DNA from: Penicillus capitatus
Taxonomy: Eukaryota > Plantae > Chlorophyta
DNA length: 64,000 nt
Direction: 5' to 3'
NCBI GenBank assembly: GCA_965649825.1
Contig: OZ287696.1
Coordinates: forward strand, 1,832,081 to 1,896,080
Of this stretch, positions 15,695 through 64,000 are shown one piece after another; position 1 is the first letter of the stretch; each line of letters starts with the position of its first letter. A model generated the notes under the pieces. That model saw nothing but the letters and a program-made list of their open reading frames with translations. It had not been told where the DNA came from and did not search any database. The position numbers and the translations under genes are program-made.

Positions 15695-16728
15695 ATGCAC
15701 TCGCTGCTGTTCACTGTCTTTATGACTTACCTCATCACCTTTGCGTCTGGTGGACAGGTATCCAACGGTTTAGAAACGGTACCTCGGAACTGAACAGTAC
15801 ATACAATACATAGGGCGCATTTGATTACCATCCAATGTCCAAGTGGCCAGACATCTGTGCCGTCGGGACAAACCAGAGTCCAATCAACATCGACACCAAC
15901 AGTGCGCCGCAACGGTAGCCGTCCTTCGAAGTCAACTGTTTTGACATTGTAGACGTCGAACCTTCGCCACCAGATGCGTGCCGCGTGGAAATCGGCACCT
16001 TGGGTACGCTCAGTGCGTACACCGTTTTCTCGACGGGTGTCTCACTGGAGGTCGCTTTCGACGAGTGGTCCACCCAACCCGACGTGCGCATTCCTGCCAA
16101 CGACTATACGATCGGCAACAGCACGACGCTAAAACCGGGAGAGATGTTGGCGGTCGAGCCAGTCCAAATGCACTATCACACTTTCAGCGAACATACCTTC
16201 GATGGATTTTACGCCCCTGGAGAACTCCACATCGTCGCGAAGGTGAAGGACAATGCGTCCGACTACTGTGATAAGACAGGTGGTTGTCTGGCCGTTTTCG
16301 GCATCATGACGGCACTAGTGGGCGAAAACGCCCGGACGCATGAAACCTTTGATCACCTCTTCCACGAGATCCCGGATGGGGTGGGCATCGAGAATGGCAT
16401 TTTTAAGGCGAAGAGACTCAACTTGGACGATTTTTTACCGTCCAGTCTTGACTACTACACCTACTTAGGAAGCCTAACCACGCCGCCCTGTACGGAGAAA
16501 GTGACATGGCATGTCTTCACAGAACCGATCTCGGTGAAGCCAGAAGTGATCGAGAAACATCAAATGATGGTCTCTTATACTCCGGGATCTGATTGCGCGT
16601 TCACCGTCTTCGGCACCTGCTTTCCACCGCGAGAGAAAACCAATTGCCGTCGAACGCAGCCTCTGCTCGAACGCAAGGTGTATTTGGTTGAAGACGATGT
16701 GCATGGATGTTTTGGATGCAGTGACTGA
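15695..16728 (+). CDS. Secreted alpha-carbonic anhydrase 2
   Basis: Signal peptide MHSLLFTVFMTYLITFASG; QSPINI, QMHYHTFSEH, GELH, GSLTTPPCTE; same intron positions as CA1. Confidence 0.93.
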
Positions 16729-17726: not shown

Positions 17727-18743
17727 ATGTATCCGTCCTCCTTCCTTGTGGTAGTTCTCTCCGTGTTTATCGCTGGCGTCCATGGAGTCGGGGTATCACA
17801 CGCCGTCTTTAACGATTCGCTTCGTTTCGAATCTTTGTCTTGTGTCGTTTAGCTTGATGTCCGCCACAAGTACTCTGCGAGAGCTCACTGGCCAGATGTG
17901 TGCGAACATGGTCACCAACAGAGTCCTATCAACATCGATTCAAAAGGTGCGGTCACATGTTAATGACCGTGCTGCGTAACAACGCGTCTTGCGCTAGGCG
18001 CGGGTGCCGCACCCGGCCACGCCGGAAGCGTTCAGTTCGGTACGTTGGGTACATTAAAAGAGTATACGGTGTGGTTCACGGGATCGCGTTTACAACTTAA
18101 ATTTGATAAGTGGTCGAAAGAAGCAACTATCCGCGTGCCGGCCAGCCAGTACATGGTCGGCAACAGTACCAATTTGAAAATCGGTGACATGCTCGCCATC
18201 GAGCCCAGGGAGATGCATTACCACACCATGAGTGAGCACACGGTTGACGGATGCTATTTTCCGGGTGAACTGCATATCGTGACCGAAGTCAAGGAGGGCG
18301 AATCGGACTACTGCGATCTGACGGGCGGCTGCTTTTACGTGTTTGGTGTGATGACGGGTTACGAAGGAGAAGGCAAAACCGCGAACAAGGAACTGAAGAA
18401 GCTGTTTTCCAAGATGCCCCAAGGAGTCGGTACCACAGTTGGCATGAATTACAAAGAGAAGCTTAGTATGGACAATTTTCTGCCGATCAATCGAGATTAC
18501 TTTACGTACCTTGGCAGTTTGACAACACCACCCTGTTCTGAGGTGGTCACCTGGTTGGTTTTTACTAATCCCATTACAATCTCCAAGAAACTCGTCGAAG
18601 ACCACCAAATGTTGGTTTCTTTCACTCCTGGAGATGACTGTACGTATTCCTTTTTTGGAGTCTGCACACCGCCTAGAGAGAAAACGAACCATCGCCTTAT
18701 TCAGCCCTACCACGGGCGCCAGATTTTTTTGGTGAAAACATAA
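17727..18743 (+). CDS. Secreted alpha-carbonic anhydrase 3
   Basis: Signal peptide MYPSSFLVVVLSVFIAGVHG; QSPINI, EMHYHTMSEH, GELH, GSLTTPPCSE; same intron positions. Confidence 0.93.
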
Positions 18744-25301: not shown

Positions 25302-27332
25302 CTACTGCACGACTCCGTTATGAAAAGGACAATTTCCATCCTTCATATTGTGCTCCGTTGATGCGATCTCTGGGCCATGTTCGACGGAAGTGGGCAGCCG
25401 CTTCGTGAACTGAAGATAGAGTCCGTTTGCAGAATGTATCGTGGCGCCTAAGACAGTGTCATATGTGTTGATGCAGGTATCGTGTTGCATCGCGCACCTG
25501 ACGTCAGTTGCACCTCGGGTGCATCTGGGGCCAATCTGAAATCATACCGTTGCAAAATGGAAGCCACAATTTCGAGCGATTCCAACAAGGCAAATTGCGA
25601 TCCTGTACAGCAACACGCCGTTAGATAGGTGTTGCCTGGCATTGTTCTTCACCGATGCATTTTCTCCGTCCGGCCCCGAACGGAAGGTAGCGGAAATTCG
25701 TAGATATCTCATTCGGCATGCCTGCTTTCTTTGGAAAACGATCGGGATCAAATTCCAATGGGTTCTCCCACAGAACGGGTGATCGATGGAGGTTCCAGAT
25801 GGATAGAAAAATGTCTGCTCCTTTCGGCAGCTCGTACTTCCCAAGCTTGACAGACTCCAACGCCCTGCGGATCAGCACTGGCGGTTGTGGATAGAGTCGC
25901 ATGGCTTCAGCCAGAACCCTCATGCAAAGATCCAGTTGCAAAAGGGATGTTGATGTGACAGGTCCATCTCCTAACACACGATCAATCTCTTTCTGCATCT
26001 CTTTCACAAGATGCGGCTTTTTCGACAGCTCAAAGAACGTCCAGGTAAGAACAGCCGCCGTCGTTTCGTGGCCAGCAATGAGAAGGGTCATCAGATCATC
26101 CATGAGCTGCTGACCTGAGATCACTTCTCCACTGACAATGAGAAAATGCAAAATGCTCATGGTCGAGGAATCGAAGGCATCATCCTTTTCCACTGTCTCG
26201 TGGACATGCTGCACGAGACGATCGATGGTCTCGCGCATCACATTGAGACTCTCCTTCACACGACGCTGCTGAGGGATGAGGACGTCGACGAATGGCAACT
26301 TCCACCATGGCATGGCAGCCACACTTCGATGCTCAGCTTCGCGTAGCACAATATATACTGCCTGTCACATCAAGCTGCTCCACAAAAACAGACATCTCGT
26401 GGGAGGAAGGTGACTTGAATGACAGGATCGTCGTGTGTCGTGGCATCGAAGTCATGATTAAAGACAGCGCGGCCAATGATGTCTAATGCCAGCCTCGAAA
26501 AGAAGGCCTCCATTTCCACCGATTGTCCATCCTCTGCCGCCGCATGCAATTTCTCCAATCCCCTTTTTGTGCACTCGTTAAACATGACCATCATTCTCTC
26601 GATGAACGCTTTGTGCAGGGATGGCAGAATCGCACGTCGTCTTTCCATCCAGATCTCGCCGTTGGCAGGAATGAGACCGTTACCCATGACGAACTCCAGG
26701 ATATCCGAAAGAATCCCTTTGCTGTATTTCTCAGCCGATGTAGATAGGATCTCCCGCATCAGCTGCGGATCCGAGACGATCACGAAGGATTGTGGTCCAA
26801 AAGAGAGCTTGAAAATACCGCCATACACGCGGAAGAGCTCGTAGAGAGGCTCGAAGAAAGGTCGGTCGACCATCTCTGCGAGGCTACCGGATGCCTCAGG
26901 CAAAGAAGCGCGCTTTGTACGCAGATACCAACGACAGAACTGGGCACCTCTGTACGCCAATGCCCGACCTGGATAACATCATCCAACAACGCTGCCACGT
27001 GCAGGTGCCGAAGTACCGAAGGGTCCCATAGAAGCCAGAGATCGACGCCATGGCTGCGTTCGCTCTGCAATGTTCTTCCTTGAGAACTCCCCACTGAGAA
27101 TGCGTTCTTCGAGCGATGTCTCTTCTGGCGAAGCATCGATCGAGTCGCTGAGCGATATTCGACGCTGCGTCGGATGCTTTTGTTGGTGGATCGAGGATGG
27201 AGTGGCATCGCGGAGCAGACTGTTGACATGCAGCGACGTTCTGGACTGAAGAGGTTTTTGCGACGTCCTCGGGCGTCGCGGAGGTTCGGAACACAGGGGA
27301 CGGTCAGCAAAGCGGCAACGAGCTGCAGACAT
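25302..27332 (-). CDS. CYP97A: Cytochrome P450 CYP97A (carotenoid beta-ring hydroxylase, LUT5-like)
   Basis: PLYELFRVYGGIFKLSFGPQSFVIVSDP, YSKGILSDILEFVMG, AGHETT, EAMRLYPQPP, heme motif PFGAGRRKCIG; N-terminal transit peptide. Confidence 0.92.
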
Positions 27333-33949: not shown

Positions 33950-34630
33950 GTGCTTCGACGCATTCTGTATCGGGGGAGATGTTCTGTTTCTCCGTACTGC
34001 ACGTGTCACACTTCCCTTTCAATGTCTTCGGAGATCTCCGGAACTCACCCAAGATGATGTGGCATGGATGACAGCGAGGAATGATCTCTTGATGGAGAAT
34101 GTGTCATCCCCGGTCTCTTATTCCAAAGAAGAGGCAATGCCAATGATCTCAAGTATTCCCACGTCCAGTCTCGAGGTCTGGAATGCTTCCTCGTGTGCTT
34201 CCACCACGCGAATCTCAAGATCGGCATTTTCATGGTATCATCCTGCATCACGAAAAGCTCGGCAGGTTCTCTGTCTGTCTGTGATTGAAAGCGGATCATG
34301 GTGGTGTCCAACAACTTCTCATTTCCGTCACGAGTCATTCGCTGAAAGGACGACGGATGCTGGATGCATTTGTCCAAGCACAGTCTTCGCGGGAATGTCA
34401 AATGTGGAGAAGAGAGTAACTCGTTCTCCTCGAGAGAGAATCCGCGCATTCTTTCAGTATCTTGGATATCATGTGATTTCTCACTCTTTCACTAAGCTTC
34501 TGTTCAGTAGGAAGTCGACCGTTTCGAATGGCATCGAGAGCAGTGCGCATCAGCACTGCTACTGTGCGGATTCTTCTCTCTGTCTACTCGTGCGTTGTCT
34601 GCGAATCTCTACCAGACTCGATTGACCATA
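33950..34630 (-). pseudogene. Degenerate coding remnant, partly duplicated at 48420-48948
   Basis: Protein-like segments in different frames (MRTALDAIRNGRLPTEQKLSERV; DLEIRVVEAHEEAFQTSRLDVGILE) broken by stops. Confidence 0.3.
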
Positions 34631-35975
34631 TCAGATGTGTTTAAAGCAGTTTACTCCATCTATCTGCGCTCATGCAGCATCTCCGTCGTCTGATAGTGAA
34701 CAAGCAACATGACAGCAGTCAGTCATTACACGTTGTGGTGTACGGTAAGACGACAGTGTCTTGTGTCCGGAGACATCGCACGCCAGCTCATCTACTCGCG
34801 TGGCAAGATAGCAGATCTCCGTCGCCAGCATGAAGAGAATTCGCCGTCTCCTCGCCTCAGCTTAAAGAAAACAGCCAGGGCGAACAGTTGCAGAGTGCTT
34901 AGAAAACAAAACCACTGTACGACGGTATGCAATGCAATGCCTCGTCGCTTGCCGAATGACCAACGTCCGACGATCTCTTGTACATACCACATGCCTTCGC
35001 CTTCATTCGAGACTTGCCTCGTTTCATTTCTATGGAAGATGCGAGTTTAGCACGGGAGAAGGGTGGACTCGGCGAGACGCTGGTTTTTGTCCGACGACAA
35101 CCGAGAACCTACTCTTGTGCTGCTCGGCGCTTGTTGGCTCGGACGGCGGCCCCGTCGACCGGGTGAATGGGCGACCGCAACCACTGTCAGAATACAAATC
35201 GCGGAGCGTGTCTGGATTCAGACGCGCAGACAGCCAGTCGCCTGGAAAAGGGGCGCTAGTAAACGACGGACCGCGACGAGCGTGCTGCGTGTTTTACATC
35301 TTCTGAACGGGAGGGGATTATTTGGGACGCCGATTCTTCCCTCGAAGATGCGCCTGTCGACAGAGCAGCCGCGCCATGGACAACCCTGAGAATCGTTCAT
35401 TTCCGTTCCACGGCCTCGAACGTTCGCTCAGGTGACATGTCGGCAATCGGCGGCGTAGATCGCCTTCAACTTTGTGGTATGTTTCTTGAAGAGATCTTTC
35501 GGTTGTCGTCGCTAAAAACCGACGCGAGTCTCTGGTTTGTGGCGCGTACGCTATTCTCGACTGCTGCGGCATCAGCGGGAAATGGCAACAAGCGAGCGCA
35601 TCCTCGCGCCCGGGCGGTCAACTCAGTCACTGCATTAGGCAAGTCAGAGCCCGTTCCTCTTTCGCAGTGACCGTGCAAGGCGGTCGACCGTATTCGTTTC
35701 GCAGGGAAACTGCCTCGCTGAGTGCTGGGAGGCAAATGGACGCTAACCGTTGGGCAGATGCGCGCCCGCCAGAGCAGTCACATCGCGACTGATCCCGAAT
35801 GAGAGCGCGAGGATCCTCAAGAGCTTTCCATGCAGCACCATCTGCTGGGTCGCAGGCGACGGATACGACCGAATTGGAAAACGCAGCTGCCTGCAAACGA
35901 GGCAGCTGCCGAATTCGGACACGTCGCTTCGGGTTTTTCTGACTGAAATTCACACCGCTGACTGCAGCTGCATGG

Positions 35976-35982
35976 TATAAAT
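35976..35982 (+). promoter_or_regulatory. TATA box of secreted-protein gene, copy 1
   Basis: TATAAAT ~95 nt upstream of the ATG, conserved in all three copies. Confidence 0.6.
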
Positions 35983-36071
35983 TCGAGCAGAATTCTCCAC
36001 CACTGCCATTTCCCTTTACGCGTTTGTGTCTTCTGTGTCTCCGAGGTTCTTCGAACTCCGTCTCAAACACC

Positions 36072-36573
36072 ATGTCTGCCAACGCAGCTTTGTTCGTCTT
36101 TGCCGCTCTTCTCTGCCTCCACGCAGCAAGATCCCTTCCACCGCAGCAACCCTCGATGGCGAATGTTTGGTGTTCTGGCAGGTGAGCGCTTACCGCCCCA
36201 CCACAGAGTTGGTCGTCGACGAGAATGGCCACGTCAACGGCAAACAGTTTTTGAATACAGACAACGCTTATGGTATGGCGGGCAGCGTTGCGAAAACTCT
36301 TTTTATTTTGCATGTGCATGTGAAGTCCCAGGTGAGAAGTATGTTGGAAACCGTGTCTACAGTACTCGAGAACCAAATTATAACGAATGCATAAGATTCA
36401 TATGCGATAAGAGCAAGTCGCCAGATCTATTTCGTCAAGTGTCGAATGAGACTGGCTCTGTCTTAGTGGACCTTGTGGCATGGGACTATTACTCAGCGGC
36501 TGCTACATGCAATGGATACGATGCGGAGTATCCCGCCGAAAAAGCCGAGGGTTGGGTGAGAGGCCTGTGCTAA
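36072..36573 (+). CDS. Small secreted Cys protein with PAN/apple-like domain, copy 1 (112 aa)
   Basis: Exons 36072-36125, 36182-36272, 36326-36412, 36467-36573; signal peptide MSANAALFVFAALLCLHAVSA; mature end ...NECIRFIC...VAWDYY...TCNGY...GWVRGLC*. Confidence 0.8.
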
Positions 36574-36994
36574 ACAGGTCGCCTGAAGAACGCAAAGCCG
36601 ATCGCATTCTTTCCGGTCTAAGTTCTGGAGATTTTGCATGACTGTCTGGAACAATCCGGTTACCTTTGAATGTTCGATTTAATGAACAGCGCAGCCGTTT
36701 TTTGAATTCGGTCTCATGACGCATGCCCTTTCCAGCGATCATGCATCCCAATTCGGACTGCTGAGATAAGAGTGAATGTGCATGACTCGCGAAGAGAGTA
36801 GACGATGGCGCTAGATATCTCTGAGGCTTGGCAAATACATGGTGCACAAGAGGTGAGAAGATCTTTAACATAAGACAATCGAGATACTGAAGAAGCTCGT
36901 AACAACAGCGTCCGATTTTCTGTCATCATCCGTGGCCTTACAATCGCGTTTACGATGGTCGCACGCATCGAAGACAGATTTGGCTCCTGAACTA

Positions 36995-42378: not shown

Positions 42379-43482
42379 ATGCTGCAGAATTCCGTCCCAA
42401 AGTCTCTCTCGCTCTCGTACTCGTACTTTCCTCCTTCTTTTCTCCGGACACGACGATTCCAACGCTTTGGTCATGTCCTCAAATCGTCGCTGCTCGTTGC
42501 CTCCGTCGGCTCTTCTCTGGGTAGAAACAGACAGAGAAGGCATTCGAGACAAAGGCACGTCACTCGCCCTTCGGCATTCGGCGAAACCTCCGTTGGCTCT
42601 GTTCTAGTGCCTCGTCTGGCAACGATGGGTACTCTCGATTCGGAGCAGAGGGCAGACGGGTGACAGATACGTTGATTGTACTCAACGTGGCGATGTTCGG
42701 CCTGCAGTTGCTGACGGGAAAGACGCTGTTGCTCCACGGAGCCAAAGCACGCGATGACCATGCCTTTGCAAATGGACACAGCGTTCGGTTTAGATCAATG
42801 AATTCATCGCCAAGGGCCAAGTCTGGAGATTTCTCACGTCGGCGTTTCTGCACGGAGATCTGCTGCACTTAGGGGTGCGGTAAGGCCTGATGGAGATCTC
42901 TGTTTGCGACGCAGTCGTGTGCGCAGTTCAACTGTAACGCCTTGCATCAGATAGGTCCGTTGGTGGAGTCGACAAGTGGCAAGGCGCGTTTCACCACAGT
43001 CTATCTTGGCTCTGCTGTCGCTGGCGGCATCCTGAGCTTCTGCATGTCGCCGCACATGTCCATCGGCGCCTCCGGTACATTCGATGCGTGGCGGCTTCTG
43101 TGTTTCGACGTTCATCAGGGGCGATCTTTGGAATTGCCGGCGCCTTGGCGATGTTCGCCTGGCGACACAAGACCCTCATGGGCCCAACATCGGATGAACT
43201 CCTAAGAAGTCTTCGCGACACCGCCGCCATTAATTTCATGTACGGCCTGATTGTGCGACGCATCGACAACTGGTGACAGATGCTGCATCGGTTGGCGAAT
43301 CGTGCTGAGCGAGCACGTGCTTCAGGGGACACTTAGGAGGTCTTGTTGGAGGAGCTGCTCTGTCTTATGTTCTCGGTCCTCGACTGCGTCCCGTTCTCAA
43401 GAACAAGAGAGTTGTGGGAATGGCGGACAAGCCGTTCCTGCCGATATTCGTGATAAAAAGCCCGACAAGGTCGCAGAAATGA
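42379..43482 (+). CDS. RBL10: Plastid rhomboid protease (RBL10-like)
   Basis: LLHGAK|INEFIAKGQVWRF..AFLH, HLG|FNCNAL, SIGASG|AIFG, RRIDNW|GHLGGLVGG; catalytic Ser and His present. Confidence 0.88.
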
Positions 43483-45955
43483 ACTCGCCCCTTCGCCGTC
43501 TAGAGTGTGCGTTCCTTCTCGACATGTTTGTCGTACAACGATGCCTTTTGTACACTTTGACGTCAACCACATCTGCCGCCGTGCGTCTTTCGTTGACTGA
43601 ATCGCGATGCACGCCACTTCGATTTCGGAAATGCGAAGTGGATAGCGTTCTGTTTGCTGCCTCATGTTCAGTTGCTGCTCGCGCAGGACTGATCGATATT
43701 TTGCACGCGCTCGGTTACAAGAGACCGATGTCCATTTCGAGTTTCAACAAGCCGCATTTTGAGCTCATGGCCGATATCTTACTGTGGTTGGTGAAACGGT
43801 ACAGAGTGCCATAGATAACTTTGCAAACGCACTGAAGAGCATGGCCGCCTTCTTAGTTGTCATCCAGACATCGACCTGCCTGAAGAGATTGGCACAGAGA
43901 CGGAAAGGGTTGTCTTTCTGACGCATGCAGGATCGCTCCTGTACACAGAGTTTCATCTGAAGCTGGATCTCAAGCGCCTCTACGCGGCGGAAGGCGATGC
44001 CATCGGAGAGTTGCTGAAGGTGGCCACTCTGTTGCATGCCTCGCGGCATGCCGGAGGCCGCTCGGTTTTGCCCGGCATCTCTCAAGATGCTCGTAAACTG
44101 TTGCTGCTGTAGACAAGCGACGGGATGCGTTCGGAAGACGTGGATTGGACGCTTGTACGTCAAGACAGGAGGCGTATCCAGGAACTGATCGAGAACCTTG
44201 GCCGCACAACGTTTGCTCTGCAGAAGGCACTCGAATGCGAAAAATCAGGAAATGACAGCGCACGTCGAAAAGCGATTTCGGTTGCTGTCGACTCCGAGGA
44301 GTTCGTTGCTGCCTTTGACACCCTCTCCTCGAGAATGGACAGTGATCTGAGGTGAGCCGTGCCTTCGAATGCGCGTTGAATTTATGCGGCTGTGTGCATT
44401 AGGGCGAAATCCGGGCGACTAGATGAAGTCTCTGCCGCAAAACAGAAAATCGAAGAGGCTGTCGATTTCAAAAGAGCCGAACTGAGACGCAGCGAGAAAC
44501 GCCTTATCTCGTTGAACACGATACGGCCGTCGTACATGGATGAATACGAAGCGCTTCAGTCTGAATTCCATACTCTGTACTTCCACAGTGGCCTCCGCCT
44601 TGATGAAAACTGCAGCGTCGTGCACTTAGTTACAAACGCTACGTTGAACAGTTTAGGAACGTGAACCACTTGGAGTGTCGCCTCGCGAAGCATCGCAACA
44701 TCGAGATGGCGAAAAAGCATCGCGAGGATAGGGAGATGAAGAGATTACAGAAGCAATGGAAGTGGGCATATACATTCCAATGTCGTCGCTTGTTCTCACC
44801 GACCATCTGCTGTACGCATTAGAAAAGAAGACGGTGCATTCTCAAAGGGCGAACAGAGTGGCATCGATTCGTCTGACACCTCTTCGGACAATGAATGCAC
44901 AAAGGAGAGAAGTGCATCGTGTGGAATCGATGTTCACCTGTCACAGAGAATCCTTTCAGGGCTTAATATCGAGATTCTGTCGAGAGATGACGACGACGGA
45001 GTGACGTTCATCGACGGGCGCAAAGTCGTCGGACGGCTTGTTCATCACGACGACGCATCTGATGCGGAGATCGAAGATTCTAGTGTGGACATATCGAGTG
45101 TTGCAGAAGATACAGACGCGTGTGAAACGGAAATTGCATCCAGTGATGGCTCAGTAAGTGCTTATCCGTCTCATGACGCCAAAAGAAGCCTCTTGCAACA
45201 GAGTCATGCACTTTCCAAGACGGGTTCACGTTCGAATGACGACGTTGTCACACCGCCTGATGACTTCTAATATCATTACCCGCCTCGAGATTGTCTCTCT
45301 TGTATGTTTCGATCTTTTTGATATGGGCGTCGCTCAAGAACTGCCACGCTTGTGTTCGATATCGAAATCATGGAGATCAAGAAGCCTACATGACATTTGT
45401 GTGAGTACTTGGGACTGATTCTGTGATGACCGTTCCCATTGTAAGAAAAACGAATGCCATTTGTAGAGAATGCAAAGATCGAAGCGCGTGCCTCTCCTGG
45501 CTACGACGAGCAAATCATCCAAGACGACGCTAATGCTTCTGTGAGAGCTGTGCAGGATGACCAAGAGATGGATATTAAGAAGGAGGAAGGTGTTCTCGCC
45601 GCAGGGCTGTGTGTGTCTAGTGGGATTGGGTGCCTGTGGTCTTCTCTACGTGGACGTCTTCAACTGGCTCCCAGGATCAATACTAGAATGCCCCATCCGC
45701 TCGACTGCTTGGGGAACACCCCTGGAGAACACTTCGTGGCCCCAGCAACTGCCCAACGGACTCTATGCATGGGTCCTGGAAGAGGACCCGAAACGTCACC
45801 TCATCTTGCGCGGTTTGTTTCTGCAGTGGGTCCTGGAAGACATCGATGGCCTACCGAAGGATCTAGCCGAGTTTGCAGGGCATGTCTCGGTGGTAATGAA
45901 TATCTCTTCGCTCTGCGGTTTCACTGAAACAAACAAACTACAGAGGCAAGCATCA
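43446..45955 (+). repeat. Inverted duplication block X, left arm (true left end not resolvable because the partner runs off the window)
   Basis: Collinear reverse complement of 61492-64000 (coordinate sum 107446-107447). Confidence 0.95.
43607..45270 (+). CDS. IFT38: Intraflagellar transport protein IFT38 / CLUAP1 / FAP22, copy 1
   Basis: LHALGYKRPMSISSFNKPHFELMADILLWLVKR, TETERVVFL, LKRLYAAEGDAIGELLK, IRPSYMDEYE, acidic tail ending DDF*. Confidence 0.88.
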
Positions 45956-46130
45956 AGGTTGCTATGAGTGACATGCTTGGAAATGTTGACGTGCAGGATT
46001 ACAGAACCTCTGCGATCGGCTCTGTTCCGATGGATTCACTGTTCTGGTATTCCCTTGCGATCAACTTAAAAATCAAGAGCCGGATGTGCGACTGAGATTA
46101 AGGCACTCATCAAGGCAGGGGTACTACATC
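45454..46130 (+). CDS. Hypothetical spliced gene, copy A (3' end diverges from copy B)
   Basis: Exons in alternating frames, duplicated at 61391-61993. Confidence 0.35.
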
Positions 46131-46533
46131 ATCCTTCGAATGTCCTCCAAAGTGTGTAGTGATGTCCCATGAGGCCAGCTGAGATGAGGAGAGTGCGACG
46201 AGATCGAGGGTCCTATTCGTCTCGCCTAATAATACGCGTCGGCAGTTCTACCGGGAGCAATTGGCGGTCCTGATGAGAAGACGCGCAGAGCCAGCGTTTT
46301 TCGGGCACGGAAGGCAGCAGACCGCCTGGCGATCATGGCCATGAAGACGCCGTCGGTCGCGTTTCGTGATCGTCGAAGGGGACGCGCGTAAGACCGACCG
46401 AATTCAAAAAACGGCTGCTGTTCATTAAATCGAACATTCAAAGGTAACCGGATTGTTCAAGAGAGTCATGCAAAATCTCAAGAACTTCGACCGGAAAGAA
46501 TGCGATCGGCTTTGCGTTCTTCAGGCGACCTGT

Positions 46534-47038
46534 TTAGCACATGCCTCTCACCCAGCCTGCGGCTGGTTCATGGGGAAACAGCCTGGCGTATCCATTGCAC
46601 GTACCAGAATTCGTGTCAAAGTCCCATGCCAAAATGCCAACCCCTAGACAGAGCCACCATCATCCGACACTTGACTGAATAGATCTGGCAACTTACCAGA
46701 GCATAGGTGCTTAATGCAGTCTTTAATAGTCAGTTGTTGTGTTGTGGAGGCAGCTTTTCCAATGAACCTCAAATCCTTGACTTCGCATGCACATGCAAAA
46801 TAAACAAGAGTTCTCGTTACGCTGCCCGCCATACATTGATTGGCGAGGCCTGTCTTCAAGAACAGTTTGCCGACGACGTGTCCTTCTTCGTCGACTACCC
46901 ACTCTGTGGTAGGGCGGTAAGCGCTCACCTGCCAGAACACCAAACGTTCGCCATCGAGGGTTGCTGCGGTGGAAGGGATCTTGCTGCGTGGAGGCAGAGA
47001 AGAGCGGCAAAGACGAACAAAGCTGCGTTGTCAGACAT
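46534..47038 (-). CDS. Small secreted Cys protein with PAN/apple-like domain, copy 2 (113 aa)
   Basis: MSDNAALFVFAALLCLHA|VSAYRPTTEWVVDEEG...LANQ|FKDLRFIG...KDCIKHLCS|GVGILAWDFDTNSGTCNGYARLFPHEPAAGWVRGMC*. Confidence 0.8.
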
Positions 47039-47127
47039 GGCGTTTGAGACGGAGTTCGAAGAACCTCGGAGAGACAGAAGACACAAACGCGCAAGGGGAA
47101 ATGGCAGTGGTCGAGAATCCTGCTCGA

Positions 47128-47134
47128 ATTTATA
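47128..47134 (-). promoter_or_regulatory. TATA box, copy 2
   Basis: TATAAAT on the minus strand ~90 nt upstream of the ATG. Confidence 0.6.
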
Positions 47135-49443
47135 CCATGCAGCTGCAGTCAGCATTCTAAATCCAGACAGCAAACCCGAAGCGACCTGTCCGAATTCGAC
47201 AGCTGCCTCGTTGGTTGACAGCTGCGTTTTCCAATTCGGTCGTATCCGTCGCCTGCGACCCAGCAGATGGTGCTGTATAGAAAGATCTTGAGGATCCTCG
47301 CGCTCTCATTCGGGATCAGTCGCGATGTGACTGCTCTGGCGGGCGCGCATCTGCCCAACGGTTAGCGTCCATTCGCCTCCCAGCACTCAGCGAGGCAGTT
47401 TCCCTGCGAAACGAGCACGGTCGACCACCTTGCACGGTCACTGCGAAAGAGGAACGGGCTCTGTCTTGCCTATAAAGGGACTGGGTTGATCGCCCGGGCC
47501 CGAGGATGCACTCGCTTGTTGCCATTTCCCGCTGATGCCGCAGCAGTCGAGAACAGCGTACGCCACAAACCAGAGACTCGCGTCGGTTTTTAGCGACGAC
47601 AACCGAAAGATCTCTCCAAGAAACACGCCACAAAGTTGAAGGCGATCTCCGCCGCCGGCTGCATACATGTCACCTGCGCGAACGTTCGAGGCCATGGAGC
47701 GGAAATGGTCCTTCTCAGGGTTGTCCATGGCGCGGCTGCTCTGTCGACAGGCGCATCTTCGAGGGAAGAATCAGCTTCGTTAAACCCTCCCCCCGTCCAT
47801 AAGGATGGACAACGCGCAGCAGGTCCGCCGCGGTCCGTCGTTTACCAGCGCCGTCTTTTGCAGGCGACTGCCTGCCTGCGCGTATGAATCCAGACACGCT
47901 CCGCGAAGTGTCTTCTAACAGTGGTTGCGGTCACCCGTTCATCCGGTCGACGGGGCCTCCGTCCATCCTAACAAACGCTAAGCAGCACGAGAGCAGGTTC
48001 TCGCGTTTTCGGCAGCCAAAAACGAGCGTTTCGCCGCGTCCAACCATCTCCCGTTCTAGCTTCGCATCTTCCGTAGAAATGAAACGAGGCAGGTCTTGAA
48101 TGAAGGCATGGCATGTGCAAGAGATCGCCGGAGAGACGTCATTCGCCCGCCAAGCGACGAGGCATCGCACGCAGTCGTACAGTGATTTGTTTTCCAAGCA
48201 CCCTGCAACTGTTCGCCCTGGCTGTTTTCTTCAAGCTGAGGCGAGGAGACGGCGAATTCTCGTCATGCTAGCGACGGAGATCTGCTATCTTGCCACGCGA
48301 GTAGATGAGCTGGCGTGCGATGTCTTCGGACACAAGACACTGTCGTCTTACCGTAACACCACAACGTGTAATGACTGACTGCTGTCATGTTGCTTGTTCA
48401 CTATCAGACGACGGAGATGCTGCATGAGCGCAGATAGATGGAGTAAACTGCTTTAAACACATCTGATATGGTCAATCGAGTCTGGTAGAGATTCGCAGAC
48501 AACGCACGAGTAGACAGAGAGAAGAATCCGCACAGTAGCAGTGCTGATGCGCACTGCTCTCGATGCCATTCGAAACGGTCGACTTCCTACTGAACAGAAG
48601 CTTAGTGAAAGAGTGAGAAATCACATGATATCCAAGATACTGAAAGAATGCGCGGATTCTCTCTCGAGGAGAACGAGTTACTCTCTTCTCCACATTTGAC
48701 ATTCCCGCGAAGACTGTGCTTGGACAAATGCATCCAGCATCCGTCGTCCTTTCAGCGAATGACTCGTGACGGAAATGAGAAGTTGTTGGACACCACCATG
48801 ATCCGCTTTCAATCACAGACAGACAGAGAACCTGCCGAGCTTTTCGTGATGCAGGATGATACCATGAAAATGCCGATCTTGAGAGTCACGTGGTGGAAGC
48901 ACACGAGGAAGCATTCCAGACCTCGAGACTGGATGTGGGAATACTTGAGAATACAGACCAGATGTTACTGATCCTCTGTTCCGTATGTAGCCAGCTACAC
49001 CTTATCGCGAAGGATACTAACCGGCAGACAGTTGGTGAAGTGACGGACAGGTGTTGACGAAGAGTGTTGAGCTATATCCACAACTTAGATACAAACACAA
49101 AGTCATTCGATATGGTGCTCTTCCAAATGATCCAGCCTGTTTGCGCGTGTGGCTGTCGGCTGAGAGACGATGACATCCGCTAAGCGATAATGATCTTTCA
49201 GCAGATATCGAGTTCATGAATATTCGATGCCTATTCCAGACGTAATACCTAGCTTCTGTCTCATCACCTTTATTTTATAAGAAATTCAAATCAAGCAAGA
49301 TACACCTAGTGTCAGAGAGAGATTTCAGCGAATACGTTGTTGAGCATGGCATCTGTGTCATCAGTGGGTTCAGAAGAGACGGCATACATGCACACTTGAT
49401 GTGACGGACGTCTGTCGTACAAACCAAGCTACATCCAATCCCT

Positions 49444-56250: not shown

Positions 56251-56403
56251 CTCAGACATCGAGAGACGCCTCCTTGTCTTTCACTGCTTGTCAGCAAGTC
56301 ATCCATCCGTTCATTGCATAAAATATCTTCCGTACGACACTTTCGTTCCGCCGTTTCAAAACCCTTGCCGAACGACGGTGCCCGCACGCGTGTACTACGA
56401 ACG

Positions 56404-57852
56404 ATGCTTCCCTCAGGCTCTCAGACCGGAGGTCCTGACACCGCCCCCGACCCGGTGCGCACGGCGGTGGCGCAGGCCGCGAACACGGTCCGGTACCGGC
56501 GCGATCTGCGCCTGTCGCCAGAGGTGCTCGAAGCGATGAGCAAGAAGGAGCTCATCCTCGTCAACACTGCCCTCCAAGCTTGCCCAACGCACATCGCCGC
56601 AACCGTGGAACCCGTCACGCTCATCGCCGCAACCGTGGAACCCGTCACGCTCATCGCCAAGATCCGCGACTACCTGTCGGCGCACAGAAAGAAGGACGAA
56701 GCCCAGCTACGCCTAGTGACACGACTCGAGAACCTGCGCAACCAGCTTCTCCTGGCGCCAGAAGCCCCAGACTTGCCTCAAGAGGGAGAAACGAACACGA
56801 CCTCTCTCTGCCGCTCCCGCCACTCAGTACCGCCGAACCAATTCCTCAGAGCACTCTCCGATGACATCCGCTCGGCTACTACGCAGATCGAGGGTATCGC
56901 CTCGCCGCTCGTACCCAAGGAACACCCGTATGCCGCTCGTTTCTCCACGGCCATTTCTATGTTGCACGAGGTACACAATTGCATGCTGTTCTATCACAGC
57001 ATCACGGATTGGACACCGTCCGCCGCTCACTCCACGCCCCCTGCTCCTCCGGCCAGAGACCAAGCAGAGACAGAATCCGGAAGCGCTGCCCCTCGATCGT
57101 ACCGGGATGCCGCCCGAAAGGCCCTGCCCACGAAGACCCCTGCACAGCAGCAACGGAACGCCCAGGCCAGAGAACTGAGGAAGAAAACCCAGGAGCTCAA
57201 AGCTCAGATCAGATGCGATGAACGCAGCTTCCAGCTGTGTCCAGTGAAACTGCAGGGAGACCGACCGTCGTTCCGTCAGCTCGGAATCAGTCTGGAGCGA
57301 AAGCTCAAGATCAAGAACCTCAAGGAGCACGTGGAAGACATCCGCACAGATCACGGAGGCCGCTACTACGTGCAAATCCGTGCCGATCTGCGGGAGTCCT
57401 TTGAGAAATCGCTGGATCGCTGCCTGGAATGTGCAGGAGATGCCTGGGACCTCGAACTGCCGGATATTGGCACGTTCACAGTGAATAATCCGTACCTCTC
57501 GCCAACCAAAGACAAAGTCCCCGTGGTCATCAGCAATGTCGATCTGGACATAGACCCGGAAGCCGCAATCGCAGCCATCGCCGAACAGAATGCTTCGCGC
57601 TGGCAGATCCCTGCGCCCGAACTCGAAGCAGAGCACTTGGCAGCTCCTCACCGAATGAATCGCCGCAAACGTGACTCTGCCGGACAGCCCCTCCCGGAAT
57701 GGACACCCAGCAGGAACTTGAAGGTCTTCGTGTCGAAGACTCTCTATGAGCAACTGAAGGATCCCAAGACCGCGTTTGCCACGCTAGACTACATGGTACT
57801 TCCCATCCGCCCGTTTACACGGCCTCCCAGCGCCCCCCGAGAAGTCTCCTGA
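56404..57852 (+). mobile_element. Non-LTR retrotransposon gag/ORF1-like open frame, cut before the zinc knuckle, no ORF2 in the window
   Basis: Intronless GC-rich ORF with coiled coil, RSYRDAA motif and PVVISNVDLDIDPE...RMNRR...W.PS..LKVFV...IRPF, typical of LINE ORF1 proteins. Confidence 0.7.
56592..56658 (+). repeat. 30-bp tandem duplication inside ORF1 (IAATVEPVTL x2)
   Basis: catcgccgcaaccgtggaacccgtcacgct twice plus catcgcc. Confidence 0.95.
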
Positions 57853-59281
57853 TCCACATTTATTACATGCATACTTCTGATTTGTGTCTCGCTCTGCATA
57901 GTCTAAACATTGGATGTAGCCCTCTCCTCTGATGTTTAACTTGAAAAGGGGATGTAAGAAGCACCAACTTTATTATCCGTTCATTGCATGCGGTCCCCGA
58001 CAACCGTACACTTTCTGCATCCACTTCGATCTACTTTTCTTCTCCAGCTGTCATGCCCCCCACAGGATAGATCATCCAAACAAAGTACGCAATCGTGTGC
58101 GAGTAGATAGGTGTTTCTATCACAGTCACATGGATGTGTGATGTGACATCTTGACCAGGTAAGAACAAGAACAGGCACGATTCTGGGTCTAGGACACAGA
58201 ACGAGATTACAAGAGACATCACGCGTCTGTTCAGTAAACAGTTAGCTACTTTCTAGGCAGATTCCCACTGAAGGACGACAGACAAATGAAGTGTCAAGAG
58301 GCACAGCAGAGCACAGCAAACTCGTGCTATGCAAAAACAAGCCCCGAGTTGCGTACTAGACAAGATGCGTCGAAAGCTGATGTCGCCAAATAGAATGAAG
58401 GAGACCGACAGCAGCCAGCCAACACATGTGGCAGTGTTGCGGGCTAAACGACTCCCACAAATCACTGCGTTGACACATGGCTGGGAATCGCCAGTCTGAT
58501 GGCAGGCCGCGTGCCGTCAAACCACGCTTCTCTAAGGGTCTCCGCGTCCATGTGGAGTCTTCCTCGACCCACGACTCCGATGCCGCTATGCAGACGCGCG
58601 CCGACTGGACTGGAGATACGTCGCGTTTGGGTTATAGTGACCTGACGTTGTCTTGTTTTAAAGACATCGTACGTAGGCCAGCCTCCTATAGGAGTGTCTC
58701 CAACAGAAGCTCTCCGTTTTTGACAGAGATGAAGATTCGCCGTCTCTTCCCTAGGAGACAGAGCACAGAGAGACGAAAAGCTGGCTGGTGGTTTAAGAAA
58801 GGGTCCGTTTTTCTTCCGTGTACCGCATCGTCGCTCACCGATGACCTCGATCAACGACCGAATTCTCATGTACCCCTTGCCGCTCTTCGAGATTTATGTT
58901 GTTTGATCTGCAACGAAGATGCGTGCATGTAGCGAGGGAGAAACATCGACGCAGCAAGACGTTCATTCTAGGTTGCGAAAAACGCGAGAACGCGTTGTCA
59001 TGCCGATCAGAGTCTGTTAATTCGGACGTGCTGCGTGTTGTCCATCCCTCTGAAGGGGAGGGGGGTTGTTTGTGACGCCGATTCTCCCCTCGAAGATGCG
59101 CCTGTTGGCGAAGCAGGCGCGCCACGGACGACCTGAGAAGCGTCTATTTCCGCCCCACGGCCTCGAACGTTCGCGCAGGTGACATATCCGCATTCGTCTG
59201 CGTAGATCGCCGTCAACTTTGTGGTGTGTTTCTTGAAGAGGTCTTTTGCTTGTCGTCGCAAAAAACCGACGCGAGTCTCTG

Positions 59282-59619
59282 TGTTGGAAATGTAGCATCC
59301 TATCCACTGTTCGTAGCCGTCTGAAGCGGTTCGTTTCAGGGTAACCACCTTTGGCGCGCTGTCCATCAGATGCGACGGGTGCTAACCTCCGAGCCGATTT
59401 CTTCATAACAGTCGGGCGATGGTTTTCGAACGTGCCCTGAAGTTCGCGACTGATAGCTGTTGGGGTTAGGAAATCCACAACCATCGTGGGTATTTAAAGA
59501 CCGACAATCCTCTTGTAATTATCCTGAGTTCTTGGTGCTATCTCTGAGCGTTCATTGCCATCGTCGTCGCGTCGTTTCGACTCGTGTTTTGTTTCTCGTT
59601 GTGCAGAAGATTCCCAACA
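59282..59619. mobile_element. Solo LTR (338 bp), Ty1/copia-like
   Basis: Begins TGTTGG, ends CCAACA, flanked by a perfect 5-bp TSD CTCTG; copies 1 and 2 show the empty site gcgagt-CTCTG-gttt; internal TATTTAAA. Confidence 0.9.
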
Positions 59620-60065
59620 CTCTGGTTTATGGCGCGTACGCTATTCTCGACTGCTGCAGCATCAACGGGAAATGGCAACAAGCGAGTGCATCCTCGGGCC
59701 CGGGCGATCAACCCACAGTCCCTTTATAGGCAAGACAGAGCCCATTCCTCTTTCGCAGTGACCGTGCAAGGCGGTCGACCGTATTCGTTTCGCAGGGAAA
59801 CTGCTTCGCTCCGTGCTGGGAGGAAAATGGACGCTAACCGTTGGGCAGATGCGCGCCCGCCAGAGCAGTCATATCGCGACTGATCCCGAATGAGAGCGCG
59901 AGGGTCCTCAAGAGCTTTCCATGCAGCACCATCTCTGGGTCGCAGGCGACGGATACGACCGAATTGGAAAACGCAGCTGCCTGCAAACGAGGCAGCTGCC
60001 GAATTCGGACAGGTCGCTTCGGGTTTTTCTGACTGAAATTCACACCGCTGACTGCAGCTGCATGG

Positions 60066-60072
60066 TATAAAT
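60066..60072 (+). promoter_or_regulatory. TATA box, copy 3
   Basis: TATAAAT ~95 nt upstream of the ATG. Confidence 0.6.
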
Positions 60073-60161
60073 TCGAGCAGGATTCTACACCACTGCCATT
60101 TCCCTTTACGCGTTTGTGTCTTCTGTCTCTCCGAGGTTCTTCGAACTCCGTCTCAAACACC

Positions 60162-60666
60162 ATGTCTGCCAACGCAGCTTTGTTCGTCCTTGCCGCTCTT
60201 CTCTGCCTCCGCGCAGTAGGATCCCTTCCACCGCAGCAACCCTCGATGGCGAGCGTTTGGTGTTCTGGCAGGTGAGCGCTTACCGCCCTACCACAGAGAA
60301 TGTCGTCGACGAGGAAGGACACGTCGTCGGCAAATTGTTCTTGAAAACAGACCTCGCCAACCAAAGTATGGCGGGCAGCGTAACGAGAACTCTTGTATAT
60401 TTTGCATGTGCATGTGAAGTCCCGGATCAAAAGTGGGTTGGACAACCTAGCGTCTCAAAACAACAAGAGACTGTTAACGACTGCGCTTATTACGTATGCA
60501 TTCTCGGTATGTTGCCAGATCTATTCAGTCAAGTGTCGAATGAGGCTGGCTCTGTGCAGAGGGCCTTGTGGCATTTGACTATTACATACCATCTAATACA
60601 TGCAATGGATACGCCACGCTGTTTGCCTATCAACCAGCCGGAGGCTGGGTGAGAGCCGTGTGCTAA
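60162..60666 (+). CDS. Small secreted Cys protein with PAN/apple-like domain, copy 3 (113 aa)
   Basis: All three introns GT-AG. MSANAALFVLAALLCLRA|VSAYRPTTENVVDEEG...LANQ|IPDQKWVG...NDCAYYVCIL|EGLVAFDYYIPSNTCNGYATLFAYQPAGGWVRAVC*. Confidence 0.82.
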
Positions 60667-61390
60667 ACAGGTCGCCTGACAGACGAAAAGCAGATCGCAT
60701 TCTTTCCGGTCTAAGTTCTTGAGATTTTGCATGACTCTCTTGAACAATCCGGTTACCTTTGAATGTTCGATTTAATGAACAGCGCAGCCGTTTTTTGAGT
60801 TCGGTCGGTCTTACGACGCGCGTCCTCTTCGACGATCGCGCAAAGCAATCGATTACGTCTTCATGGCCACGATCACCACCAGGCCGTTTTGCTGCCTGCC
60901 ATGCACTTAGTGCTGGCTCTGTGCATCTTCTTATCAAGATCAACTTCTTCTTGCAGAACGGCAGGCGCGAACACCTTCTTCTCGTCGAACTCTGCTTATC
61001 GACGCCCAGCGTGTTTGTCATGTCGCGGCAGATGCCAGGCATTCAAACGTAGAATGCCCATCCGCGAAGGAAAGACACGCACGGCTCCCGCACGCGGAGC
61101 CCTCAGGTGCTGCAAGCACGGACGCCTGAGCTACGGACAGCTATGTAGACGCGACCTCGGAATCCAATTCGACGAAGCACGCGTCGAAGAAGACGGCAGG
61201 TGCACCTGGCGGATTTGCGATTCACCACGCCAGGAGGCAACACCCTTCGGCGCATCGGCCTTTTCCGTTTTCTTCGCTCGTCGGAGAAAGAAAAACTGGG
61301 CCACAACGCGTCGTTCTGAAAATGGAGACTTGGCCGATCGGACACGGAGTTGTTGAGCACCAGGTTTACAGATGGATCACTGTCAGACAA

Positions 61391-61993
61391 TCATTGTTCT
61401 GAGTGCACCAGTGAGACAATGGCCGGTTCGAGTTTCTCCAAGACGAATTGTCGAGGACAGAGATCGCGAGGCATGTCATCACGGCCGCTTGTGATGCTTG
61501 CCTCTGCAGTATGTTTGTCTCGGCGAAGTCGCAGGGCGAAGCGACATTCGTCATCACCGAGGCATTCCCTGCAAACTCGACTAGATCCTTCGGTAGGCCA
61601 TCGATGTCTTCCAGGACCCACTGCAGAAACAAACCGCGCAAGATGAGGTGACGTTTCGGGTCCTCTTCCAGGACCCATGCATAGAGTCCGTTGGGCAGTT
61701 GCTGGGGCCACGAAGTGTTCTCCAGGGGTGTTCCCCAAGCAGTCGAGCGGATGGGGCATTCTAGTATTGATCCTGGGAGCCAGTTGAAGACGTCCACGTA
61801 GAGAAGACCACAGGCACCCAATCCCACCAGACACACACAGCCCTGCGGCGAGAACACCTTCCTCCTTTTCAATATCCATCTCTTGATCATCCTGCACAGC
61901 ATCCACAAACGCGTTCGCGTCGTCTTGGATGATTTGCTCGTCGTAGCCAGGAGAGGCACGCGCTTCGATCTTTGCATTCTCGACAAATGGCAT
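61391..61993 (-). CDS. Hypothetical spliced gene, copy B
   Basis: Inverted copy of 45454-45955 with a different last exon. Confidence 0.35.
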   Translation of the reverse strand: MPFVENAKIEARASPGYDEQIIQDDANAFVDAVQDDQEMDIEKEEGVLAAGLCVSGGIGCLWSSLRGRLQLAPRINTRMPHPLDCLGNTPGEHFVAPATAQRTLCMGPGRGPETSPHLARFVSAVGPGRHRWPTEGSSRVCRECLGDDECRFALRLRRDKHTAEASITSGRDDMPRDLCPRQFVLEKLEPAIVSLVHSEQ

Positions 61994-64000
61994 TCGTTTT
62001 TCTTACAATGGGAACGGTCATCACAGAATCAGTCCCAAGTACTCACACAAATGTCATGTAGGCTTCTTGATCTCCATGATTTCGATATCGAACACAAGTG
62101 TGGCAGTTCTTGAGCGACGCCCATATCAAAAAGATCGAAACATACAAGAGAGACAATCTCGAGGCGGGTAATGATATTAGAAGTCATCAGGCGGTGTGAC
62201 AACGTCGTCATTCGAACGTGAACCCGTCTTGGAAAGTGCATGACTCTGTTGCAAGAGGCTTCTTTTGGCGTCATGAGACGGATAAGCACTTACTGAGCCA
62301 TCACTGGATGCAATTTCCGTTTCACACGCGTCTGTATCTTCTGCAACACTCGATATGTCCACACTAGAATCTTCGATCTCCGCATCAGATGCGTCGTCGT
62401 GATGAACAAGCCGTCCGACGACTTTGCGCCCGTCGATGAACGTCACTCCGTCGTCGTCATCTCTCGACAGAATCTCGATATTAAGCCCTGAAAGGATTCT
62501 CTGTGACAGGTGAACATCGATTCCACACGATGCACTTCTCTCCTTTGTGCATTCATTGTCCGAAGAGGTGTCAGACGAATCGATGCCACTCTGTTCGCCC
62601 TTTGAGAATGCACCGTCTTCTTTTCTAATGCGTACAGCAGATGGTCGGTGAGAACAAGCGACGACATTGGAATGTATATGCCCACTTCCATTGCTTCTGT
62701 AATCTCTTCATCTCCCTATCCTCGCGATGCTTTTTCGCCATCTCGATGTTGCGATGCTTCGCGAGGCGACACTCCAAGTGGTTCACGTTCCTAAACTGTT
62801 CAACGTAGCGTTTGTAACTAAGTGCACGACGCTGCAGTTTTCATCAAGGCGGAGGCCACTGTGGAAGTACAGAGTATGGAATTCAGACTGAAGCGCTTCG
62901 TATTCATCCATGTACGACGGCCGTATCGTGTTCAACGAGATAAGGCGTTTCTCGCTGCGTCTCAGTTCGGCTCTTTTGAAATCGACAGCCTCTTCGATTT
63001 TCTGTTTTGCGGCAGAGACTTCATCTAGTCGCCCGGATTTCGCCCTAATGCACACAGCCGCATAAATTCAACGCGCATTCGAAGGCACGGCTCACCTCAG
63101 ATCACTGTCCATTCTCGAGGAGAGGGTGTCAATGGCAGCGACGAAGTCCTCGGAGTCGACAGCAACCGAAATCGCTTTTCGACGTGCGCTGTCATTTCCT
63201 GATTTTTCGCATTCGAGTGCCTTCTGCAGAGCAAACGTTGTGCGGCCAAGGTTCTCGATCAGTTCCTGGATACGCCTCCTGTCTTGTCGTACAAGCGTCC
63301 AATCCACGTCTTCCGAACGCATCCCATCACCTGTCTACAGCAGCAACAGCTTACGAGCATCTTGAGAGATGCCGGGCAAAACCGAGCGGCCTCCGGCATG
63401 TCGCGAGGCATGCAACAGAGTGGCCACCTTCAGCAACTCTCCGATGGCATCGCCTTCCGCCGCGTAGAGGCGCTTGAGATCCAGCTTCAGATGAAACTCT
63501 GTGTACAGGAGCGATCCTGCATGCGTCAGAAAGTCGACCCTTTCCGTCTCTGTGCCAATCTCTTCAGGCAGGTCGATGTCTGGATGACAACTAAGAAGGC
63601 GGCCATGCTCTTCAGTGCGTTTGCAAAGTTATCTGTGACAGTCTGTACCGTTTGACCAACCACGGTAAGATATCGGCCATGAGCTCAAAATGCGGCTTGG
63701 TGAAACTCGAAATGGACATCGGTCTCTTGTAACCGAGCGCGTGCAAAATATCGATCAGTCCTGCGCGAGCAGCAACTGAACATGAGGCAGCAAACAGAAC
63801 GCTATCCACTTCGCATTTCCGAAATCGAAGTGGCGTGCATCGCGATTCAGTCAACGAAAGACGGACGGCGGCAGATGTGGTCGACGTCAAAGTGTACAAA
63901 AGGCATCGTTGTACGACAAACATGTCGAGAAGGACGCACACTCTGGAAGGCGAAGGGGCGAGTTCATTTGTGCGACCTTGTCGGGCTTTTTATCGCGAAT
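61492..64000 (-). repeat. Inverted duplication block X, right arm (runs off the window, includes the RBL10 3' end)
   Basis: Reverse complement of 43446-45955. Confidence 0.95.
62177..63840 (-). CDS. IFT38: IFT38 / CLUAP1, copy 2
   Basis: Same exon structure, frame open; N>T, L>P, V>D, E>D and F>I changes in the 5' half, near-identical 3' half. Confidence 0.85.

Follow-up and report, generated by a model that had tools for sequence, protein, structure and literature searches.

Why do the coding exons of a small gene differ far more between its copies than the introns that lie between them? This question is raised by three paralogues, here designated A, B, and C, which we found by repeat search and alignment in a 64-kb stretch of eukaryotic DNA (about 51% G+C; hereafter, the window). 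The original prediction for copy B held that a mature domain of 64 amino acid residues is hypervariable between conserved introns and flanks, and ascribed this to diversifying selection or to cassette-like exchange of exons. Exons that outpace their own introns are a textbook sign of adaptive diversification, seen mainly in animal venoms and in immune and reproductive proteins.

Each of the three copies is a four-exon gene of about 113 codons, with in-frame coding sequences of 339 (A), 342 (B), and 342 nt (C). When three frames were read, only one exon model yielded an intact coding sequence in all three copies (Table 1). There are three introns of 53-56 nt in each gene, all in phase 1 except intron 1. 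The intron positions are kept in the 10 modelled members of the family, namely A, B, C, and seven loci from two related genomes, and the intron phases of A, B, and C recur in these seven loci. The donor of intron 1 is GCAAGA in A and B, GTAGGA in C, and GTAAGA in more distant homologues, and the donor of intron 3 is GCAAGT in A versus GTAAGT in B and GTATGT in C. As the sites with GC donors have GT in paralogues, these segments are real GC-AG or GT-AG introns and not coding sequence; by the aligned sites, the donor type has flipped between recent copies.

Table 1. Positions in the window of the three paralogues, the duplications that hold them, and neighbouring genes
Feature	Position	Strand	Remarks
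Copy A, whole gene	36072-36573	+	
Copy A, exons	36072-36125, 36182-36272, 36326-36412, 36467-36573	+	Introns 1 and 3 have GC donors
Copy B, whole gene, ATG to TAA	46534-47038	-	TAA at 46536-46534
Copy B, exon 1	47038-46985	-	Putative signal peptide of 18 codons, MSDNAALFVFAALLCLHA; 94-98% identical across copies
Copy B, intron 1	46984-46929	-	GC-AG, 56 nt
Copy B, exon 2	46928-46835	-	Conserved N-terminal segment VSAYRPTTE.VVDE.GHVVGK...; last 7 or so codons already variable
Copy B, intron 2	46834-46781	-	54 nt
Copy B, exon 3	46780-46697	-	Most variable exon, 57-68% nucleotide identity; predicted strand 1 and Cys-x4-Cys helix
Copy B, intron 3	46696-46644	-	53 nt
Copy B, exon 4	46643-46534	-	Variable loops, fixed AWD / C-x-G-Y / GW..C frame, stop codon
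Copy C, whole gene	60162-60666	+	
Copy C, exons	60162-60215, 60272-60365, 60420-60506, 60560-60666	+	All donors GT
GC donor sites	46984-46979 (B); 36126-36131, 36413-36418 (A)		Compare 60216-60221 in C
TATAAA box	47129-47134	-	96 nt 5' of the B ATG; invariant in A, B, and C
Duplication arm with A	34147-36713	+	Inverted relative to the B arm
Duplication arm with B	46396-48950	-	
Duplication arm with C	59023-60939	+	Inverted relative to B 47827-46268
Cluap1/IFT38-like gene block	43446-45976	+	Adjoins B
Inverted duplicate of this block	61471-64000	-	Adjoins C
Tandem alpha-type carbonic anhydrase genes (three)	14067-15176, 15985-16728, 18045-18743	+	49-58% identical, saturated dS
CYP97A-type (LUT5-like) plastid carotenoid hydroxylase exon	25621-26349	-	E 6e-73 to Arabidopsis LUT5
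Cold-shock-domain ORF	1798-4150	+	Followed by GGYGG-type Gly/Tyr-rich repeats, 2776-2940 and 3905-4147

Word-based searches and exhaustive HMMER recovered homologues only from two ENA metagenome assemblies, in which they lie on long eukaryotic contigs as unspliced gene calls; one assembly has at least three loci and the other at least five, some of them haplotype pairs. A weak match to a sushi-repeat protein (P0131, E = 9e-4) was discounted as chance, amplified by the repeats. One locus, L001, is orthologous to C; its flanks are 92-94% identical and it holds one copy. The Ostreobium quekettii genome is diploid, has 52.4% G+C and a large trypsin expansion, and was annotated with a gene prediction that allows GC donors; the genome paper makes no mention of the family (10.1101/2020.07.21.211367). 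As far as these searches reach, A, B, and C belong to a previously undescribed, lineage-restricted family.

Several further observations were made at these loci. Intron 2 of B, of C (60366-60419), and of L001 is 54 nt long, in frame, and free of stop codons, so that its retention would add CMAGSVTRTLVYFACACE, with three Cys; the intron is 53 nt long in A and 44-51 nt in other family members. L002:10001-10510 and L006:10001-10510 resemble two haplotypes; they are 97-100% identical and differ by six non-synonymous and no synonymous changes, all in exon 2, which is conserved elsewhere, five of them within eight codons (GHVVGKLVLNK versus GHIVSKVVFYK). The genes of L004 and L005 are identical. Trypsin-domain genes occur in related loci, and a gene call of 8,284 residues without Pfam matches runs off the end of L007 (1-293, minus strand). 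The orthologous copy in L001 is adjoined by a CYFIP gene, whose best named relative is from Caulerpa lentillifera, a siphonous green alga (44% identity).

The window also contains genes for a cold-shock-domain/Gly-rich protein, three alpha-carbonic anhydrases, an aminotransferase, PRMT5, Cluap1, and an alpha/beta hydrolase. The neighbouring genes, including those of the Cluap1/IFT38-like and CYP97A types, indicate a flagellum-bearing and plastid-bearing alga. Together with the indirect clues from the CYFIP relative, the trypsin-domain genes, the G+C content, and the GC donors, they make Ostreobium, a borer of coral skeletons, or a close relative a plausible host. No receptor-like or mating-type gene was recognisable by Pfam searches of the large ORFs in the window and the related loci, and no Rfam match was obtained anywhere in the window. 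At 56305-56319 and 57975-57989, a perfect direct repeat of 15 nt, ATCCGTTCATTGCAT, flanks a segment of 1,655 nt (56320-57974) that is unmatched in L001 and contains most of a 512-codon ORF without Pfam matches; the repeat suggests that this segment is an insertion that duplicated its target site.

The contrast between exons and non-coding DNA is seen in every pair of copies. Identities are given here in the order A-B, A-C, and B-C. The 500 nt upstream of the genes are 93, 96, and 94% identical, and the 150 nt 3' of the stop codon are 96, 93, and 95% identical. Exon 1 (53/54, 52/54, and 51/54) and intron 1 (55/56, 52/56, and 53/56) are similarly conserved. Exon 2 is 80, 79, and 89% identical, and intron 2 is identical at 49/53, 49/53, and 52/54 positions. 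Exon 3 falls to 48/84, 52/84, and 57/84; intron 3 again has 45/53, 45/53, and 47/53 identical positions, and exon 4 is 72, 73, and 79% identical. Over the 64 codons of exons 3-4, only 22, 25, and 27 amino acid residues are identical (34-42%), and these values match exactly those of the original prediction. Its counts for the first two copies (53/54 in exon 1, 55/56 in intron 1, about 48/54 in intron 2, 45/54 in intron 3, and about 47/80 in exon 3) were likewise reproduced, and the well-conserved 3' UTR that it described corresponds to 93-96% identity in the first 150 nt past the stop. The limits of the variable domain need correction: exons 3-4 are variable as claimed, but the variability begins in the 3' third of exon 2, so that the variable stretch runs from the last codons of exon 2 over intron 2 to exon 3, and over intron 3 to exon 4, skipping both introns. 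The secreted protein is probably of about 94-95 residues (exons 2-4) and not just the 64 residues of exons 3-4.

In terms of substitution rates, dN in exons 3-4 is 0.45-0.57, versus a K of 0.07-0.11 in the introns and 0.05-0.065 in the flanks, a five- to ten-fold difference. When the non-synonymous sites of exons 3-4 were compared with the introns, Fisher tests gave p values of 1e-9 to 3e-10. The same was found for the orthologous pair C and L001, in which exon dN is 0.36 and flank K is 0.09, the introns and flanks again being more conserved. The differences among A, B, and C are scattered single substitutions together with a few 3-nt indels. As introns 2 and 3 are conserved between variable coding segments, this pattern argues against a regional mutator and against segments of different age.

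Is the variable part under selection for amino acid change, or merely free to change? Estimated by the NG86 method, dN/dS in exons 3-4 is 1.20 (A-B), 1.85 (A-C), and 3.58 (B-C), with unsaturated dS values of 0.42, 0.31, and 0.13, respectively. Between B and C, about 50 non-synonymous differences are found in exons 3-4, versus about 5.5 synonymous ones. In pairwise Fisher tests, dN exceeds dS significantly in B-C (p = 0.008) and B-L001 (p = 0.044) alone; for A-B the difference in exons 3-4 is non-significant (p = 0.40). For the codon site-model check that the original prediction had proposed, we used our own GY94 likelihood with F3x4 frequencies, not codeml, on the sequences of A, B, C, and L001, and omega in exons 3-4 exceeded one. 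The one-ratio model (M0) gave an omega of 2.27 (likelihood ratio test versus 1, p = 0.0014), a value that, like the other codon-model results, may be affected by the uncertain alignment of exon 3. Model M2a fitted better than M1a (2dlnL 29.0 in exons 3-4 and 43.0 across the mature region; p = 5e-7 to 5e-10) and placed about 32% of sites at an omega of about 8; only four close sequences entered these site models, and M2a tests can be inflated by gene conversion of the kind seen at this locus. In the deep pairs L002-L004, A-L004, and L003-L010, dS is saturated (1.1-1.8) and dN/dS is uninformative.

The sites of high posterior probability lie before and in strand 1 of the predicted structure, on one face of the helix, and in two loops, whereas the posterior is about zero at C70, C75, A82-W-D, T91-C-N-G-Y, G106-W, and C112. 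The three ordinary carbonic-anhydrase paralogues of the window, taken for comparison, show saturated dS, dN of 0.3-0.4, and dN/dS far below 1, the very picture that the original prediction had named as contrary to its claim and that is absent from A, B, and C. Taken together, diversifying selection on exons 3-4 is supported by these sequence comparisons, and this part of the prediction is borne out.

Very high amino acid divergence in proteins that have no homologue of known function might also arise if the three copies were decaying pseudogenes under relaxed constraint. All 10 modelled members, however, keep open frames, splice sites, and the scaffold of four Cys, Gly, and Trp, and omega is significantly above 1 rather than equal to it. 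Moreover, omega is 0.2-0.8 in the signal peptide and N-terminal segment among A, B, and C, which indicates purifying selection in another part of the same genes. We consider decay scarcely credible.

A second feature of exons 3-4 calls for another kind of explanation. In the pairs that include A, dS (0.31-0.42) exceeds intron K (0.085-0.106) and is 3-6 times the K of introns and flanks, and the same excess is seen where the two copies encode the same residue (4/14 and 5/16 synonymous sites). This synonymous excess is not predicted by selection at the protein level alone. It would be expected if the paralogues were old, and if conversion had homogenised their introns, UTRs, and promoters while selection kept the pre-existing exon differences, as in MHC genes. 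Patches in the flanks that are 99-100% identical, which reflect recent conversion or duplication, agree with such a history, as does the upstream K among A, B, and C (0.05-0.065), which is lower than that between C and its syntenic orthologue in L001 (0.09). In B-C, by contrast, there is no such excess: dS (0.06-0.14) equals non-coding K (0.065-0.07) while dN is 0.45, and synonymous changes at unchanged codons number 1/18. In addition, introns of 53-56 nt would have to be converted with the exons of 84-110 nt on either side spared, exactly to the splice sites, and an omega above 1 is unexpected from age alone. Thus, homogenisation of old paralogues as the full explanation appears unlikely to us; it cannot by itself explain conserved islands of 53-56 nt that end exactly at splice sites, nor the pair B-C. 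Homogenisation of the non-coding DNA probably adds to the contrast between exons and introns in the case of copy A.

Each copy is held in a unit of about 2.5 kb, and the units form inverted duplications (Table 1). The flanks bear patches of 600-1000 nt at 99-100% identity; for example, positions 34197-34795 of the A arm are 99-100% identical to the B arm. The Cluap1/IFT38-like blocks next to B and C are 97.6% identical overall, and 1000 nt of them (61991-62990) contain one mismatch. As read from these alignments, gene conversion of the flanks also occurs. The match of the Cluap1/IFT38-like blocks reaches the end of the window, and a larger palindrome, perhaps with PRMT5 and another copy of the family, may extend past the 64 kb.

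The close similarity of these blocks (97.6-100%) lies within the range of heterozygosity, and it is conceivable that B and C, and perhaps A, are divergent alleles or haplotypes of one recognition locus under balancing selection that were mis-assembled from a heterozygous diploid. The single copy in L001 at the orthologous place would fit this, and so would the diploid genome of the candidate host Ostreobium quekettii, which was assembled from short and Nanopore reads and has a heterozygosity of 1.29% (10.1101/2020.07.21.211367). Nevertheless, B and C are inverted in one contig, with about 10 kb of unique, gene-bearing sequence between them, and the identity of the arms decays gradually toward their inner ends. 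The third copy lies in a different context, and the related genomes hold several dispersed loci. An allelic origin is therefore a doubtful reading, to which we give rather little weight.

A block of about 1.07 kb 5' of the ATG is also shared (A, about 35003-36071; B, 47039 to about 48123; and the loci L008 and L010). It is 72-83% conserved across contigs and species and has a common, sharp outer boundary. No conserved ORF of a hidden upstream gene was found in this region of about 1 kb. The block may be a shared promoter or regulatory region, or the edge of the duplication unit.

The raised dS in exons 3-4 and their low ratio of transitions to transversions (0.5-0.8, versus 1.0-1.7 in non-coding DNA) could instead reflect a mutational mechanism targeted to coding sequence, and not selection: error-prone repair, accelerated segment switching in exons (ASSET), or copying from donor cassettes. 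ASSET is known in three-finger toxins (PMC2474615, PMC2711939). In A, B, and C, however, introns 2 and 3 inside the variable stretch are spared, as are the structural codons. The changes are dispersed single substitutions and not replaced blocks, and selection for amino acid change also yields an excess of transversions. Exchange of exons as cassettes, the other half of the original prediction, found no support: tblastn of every variable domain against the window and the 10 related loci gave no match below E 0.03 outside the known genes, so that no extra fragments resembling exons 3-4, and hence no donors, were found there. A purely mutational origin of the pattern is, in our estimation, very improbable.

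What kind of protein would carry such a surface? The product of exon 1 in A, B, and C is MS(A/D)NAALFV(F/L)AALLCL(H/R)A, 18 residues that coincide exactly with the exon; its hydrophobic core and the site between HA and VS suggest a signal peptide. The original prediction had also described a fixed Cys/Trp/Gly scaffold, and in the alignment of 10 members the four Cys and the Gly of C-x-G-[YF] are indeed invariant and the two Trp nearly so. No Pfam match was obtained with the three proteins from the window and the 10 domain sequences, PAN families being absent even at E <= 10. Searches of PDB sequences with single proteins and with the family profile gave chance matches only (in the case of the profile, to Ig), and no similarity to known toxin families was detected by Pfam, PDB sequence, or Foldseek searches.

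Structure was predicted with AF2. The model from a single sequence reached a pLDDT of 50.6. With an alignment of seven rows, consisting of fragments from the window with P0001 and P0002 and representing only about four or five different proteins, the pLDDT was 73-89 at residues 56-112, with the order E-H-E-E-E and an N-terminal hairpin of low confidence. Of the four invariant Cys, two form the C-x4-C motif of the predicted helix; the third is in strand 3 and the fourth at the C-terminus. When variable residues were mapped on this model, as had been suggested, they fell in strand 1, on the face of the helix, and in loops. Among the 50 PDB matches listed by Foldseek, almost all were PAN/apple modules; the best of those listed was the Sarcocystis lectin SML-2 (2yil; rmsd 1.5 A over 56 columns, probability 1.0, E 0.02), and others were the HGF N domain, apple domains of factor XI and prekallikrein, an Eimeria PAN module, MIC4, and AMA1. 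These matches are weak (E 0.02-0.5, TM 0.3-0.48), and a PAN/apple-like fold is the best structural lead from the model, not an established membership. Modules of the PAN/apple class bind glycans or proteins outside the cell, and a predicted fold of this class fits a surface under diversifying selection.

On balance, we think it reasonably probable that A, B, and C are functional paralogues encoding secreted, PAN-like binding proteins under diversifying selection, with gene conversion acting on the arms that hold them. Each protein would consist of a signal peptide of 18 residues, a conserved N-terminal segment of about 30 residues, and a C-terminal module of about 60 residues with two probable disulfides and a predicted fold like a minimal PAN/apple domain. 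The copies would be young (non-coding K of about 0.05-0.1) and would lie in nested inverted duplications, between which gene conversion still transfers sequence. Substitutions that change amino acids would have been fixed in the exposed strand, the helix face, and the loops at several times the neutral rate, with the structural residues (four Cys, Gly, two Trp, AWD, and CxGY) held in place. Such a protein may serve in extracellular binding or recognition, in the manner of a lectin or adhesin, with an ever-changing target, which could be a microbial or host surface, or a partner in self or mate recognition. The sequences show the gene structure, the family, the exon-specific divergence, an omega above 1, and the conserved scaffold; for these three proteins, we infer secretion, disulfide pairing, a PAN-like fold (from the model), a binding function, and an ecological driver.

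A more speculative proposal goes further: the family could be a recognition locus of a siphonous endolithic green alga, for self/non-self recognition, mating, or the discrimination of microbes or the coral host, in which selection on point mutations is combined with a substitution process specific to exons, and in which conversion between the arms of a palindrome keeps the remainder identical. An exon-specific process is hinted at by the raised synonymous change and the transversion bias with spared introns. We regard this proposal as a long shot.

How does this family compare with known systems? Cone-snail conopeptide superfamilies show the same accelerated-evolution architecture, and error-prone repair has been proposed for conopeptides. 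As in snake PLA2, three-finger toxins, and conopeptides, the copies studied here are young duplicates, tandem or segmental; as in venom families generally, their mature exons are less conserved than the signal peptide, introns, and UTRs, dN/dS exceeds 1 with a fixed cysteine framework, and the variable part has some excess of synonymous changes and transversions. The accelerated-evolution pattern of venom gene families has been described in detail (PMC2474615, PMC2711939, PMC6062510). Unlike the venom genes, A, B, and C have tiny introns (53-56 nt) and no visible block-wise segment switching; they are related to the venom genes neither in sequence nor in fold, and the algal host has no venom apparatus.

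The predicted module resembles PAN/apple domains in its modelled core of strand, helix, and three strands, in a helix with two Cys that may pin it to the sheet, in its length of about 60-90 residues, and in its putatively extracellular location. It differs from them in that neither Pfam PAN models nor PDB sequences match it, profile searches included, in its C-x4-C spacing of the helix Cys, and in standing alone as a single domain, outside any larger adhesin or protease. Its third Cys also lies in a different strand from that in what we take to be the textbook PAN/apple pattern. With the MHC type of intron homogenisation the family shares exons that diverge more than introns, conversion of the flanks, and some elevation of exon dS; it differs in that the copies are treated as paralogues, that conversion tracts are usually much longer than these introns, and that dS is not raised in B-C. 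Like plant SCR/SP11, lysin, and bindin, the proteins are small, putatively secreted, and braced by cysteines, and combine a hypervariable surface with an omega above 1, although neither a linked receptor gene nor a mating-type context was recognised in the window, their neighbours being PRMT5, Cluap1, carbonic anhydrases, and CYP97.

To our knowledge, almost nothing is known of the molecules that such algae use toward microbes, hosts, or mates. The family offers a concrete candidate for an interaction surface, about 95 residues long, probably with a PAN-like scaffold that tolerates extreme surface change, and the locus provides a clean natural experiment, with gene conversion and diversifying selection at work only a few hundred bases apart. 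The evolutionary principle was already known; what is new is its occurrence in an unannotated algal family. If the recognition-locus proposal were true, the family would be an algal counterpart of the hypervariable loci of venom and immune systems, with an unexplained mutational input specific to exons.
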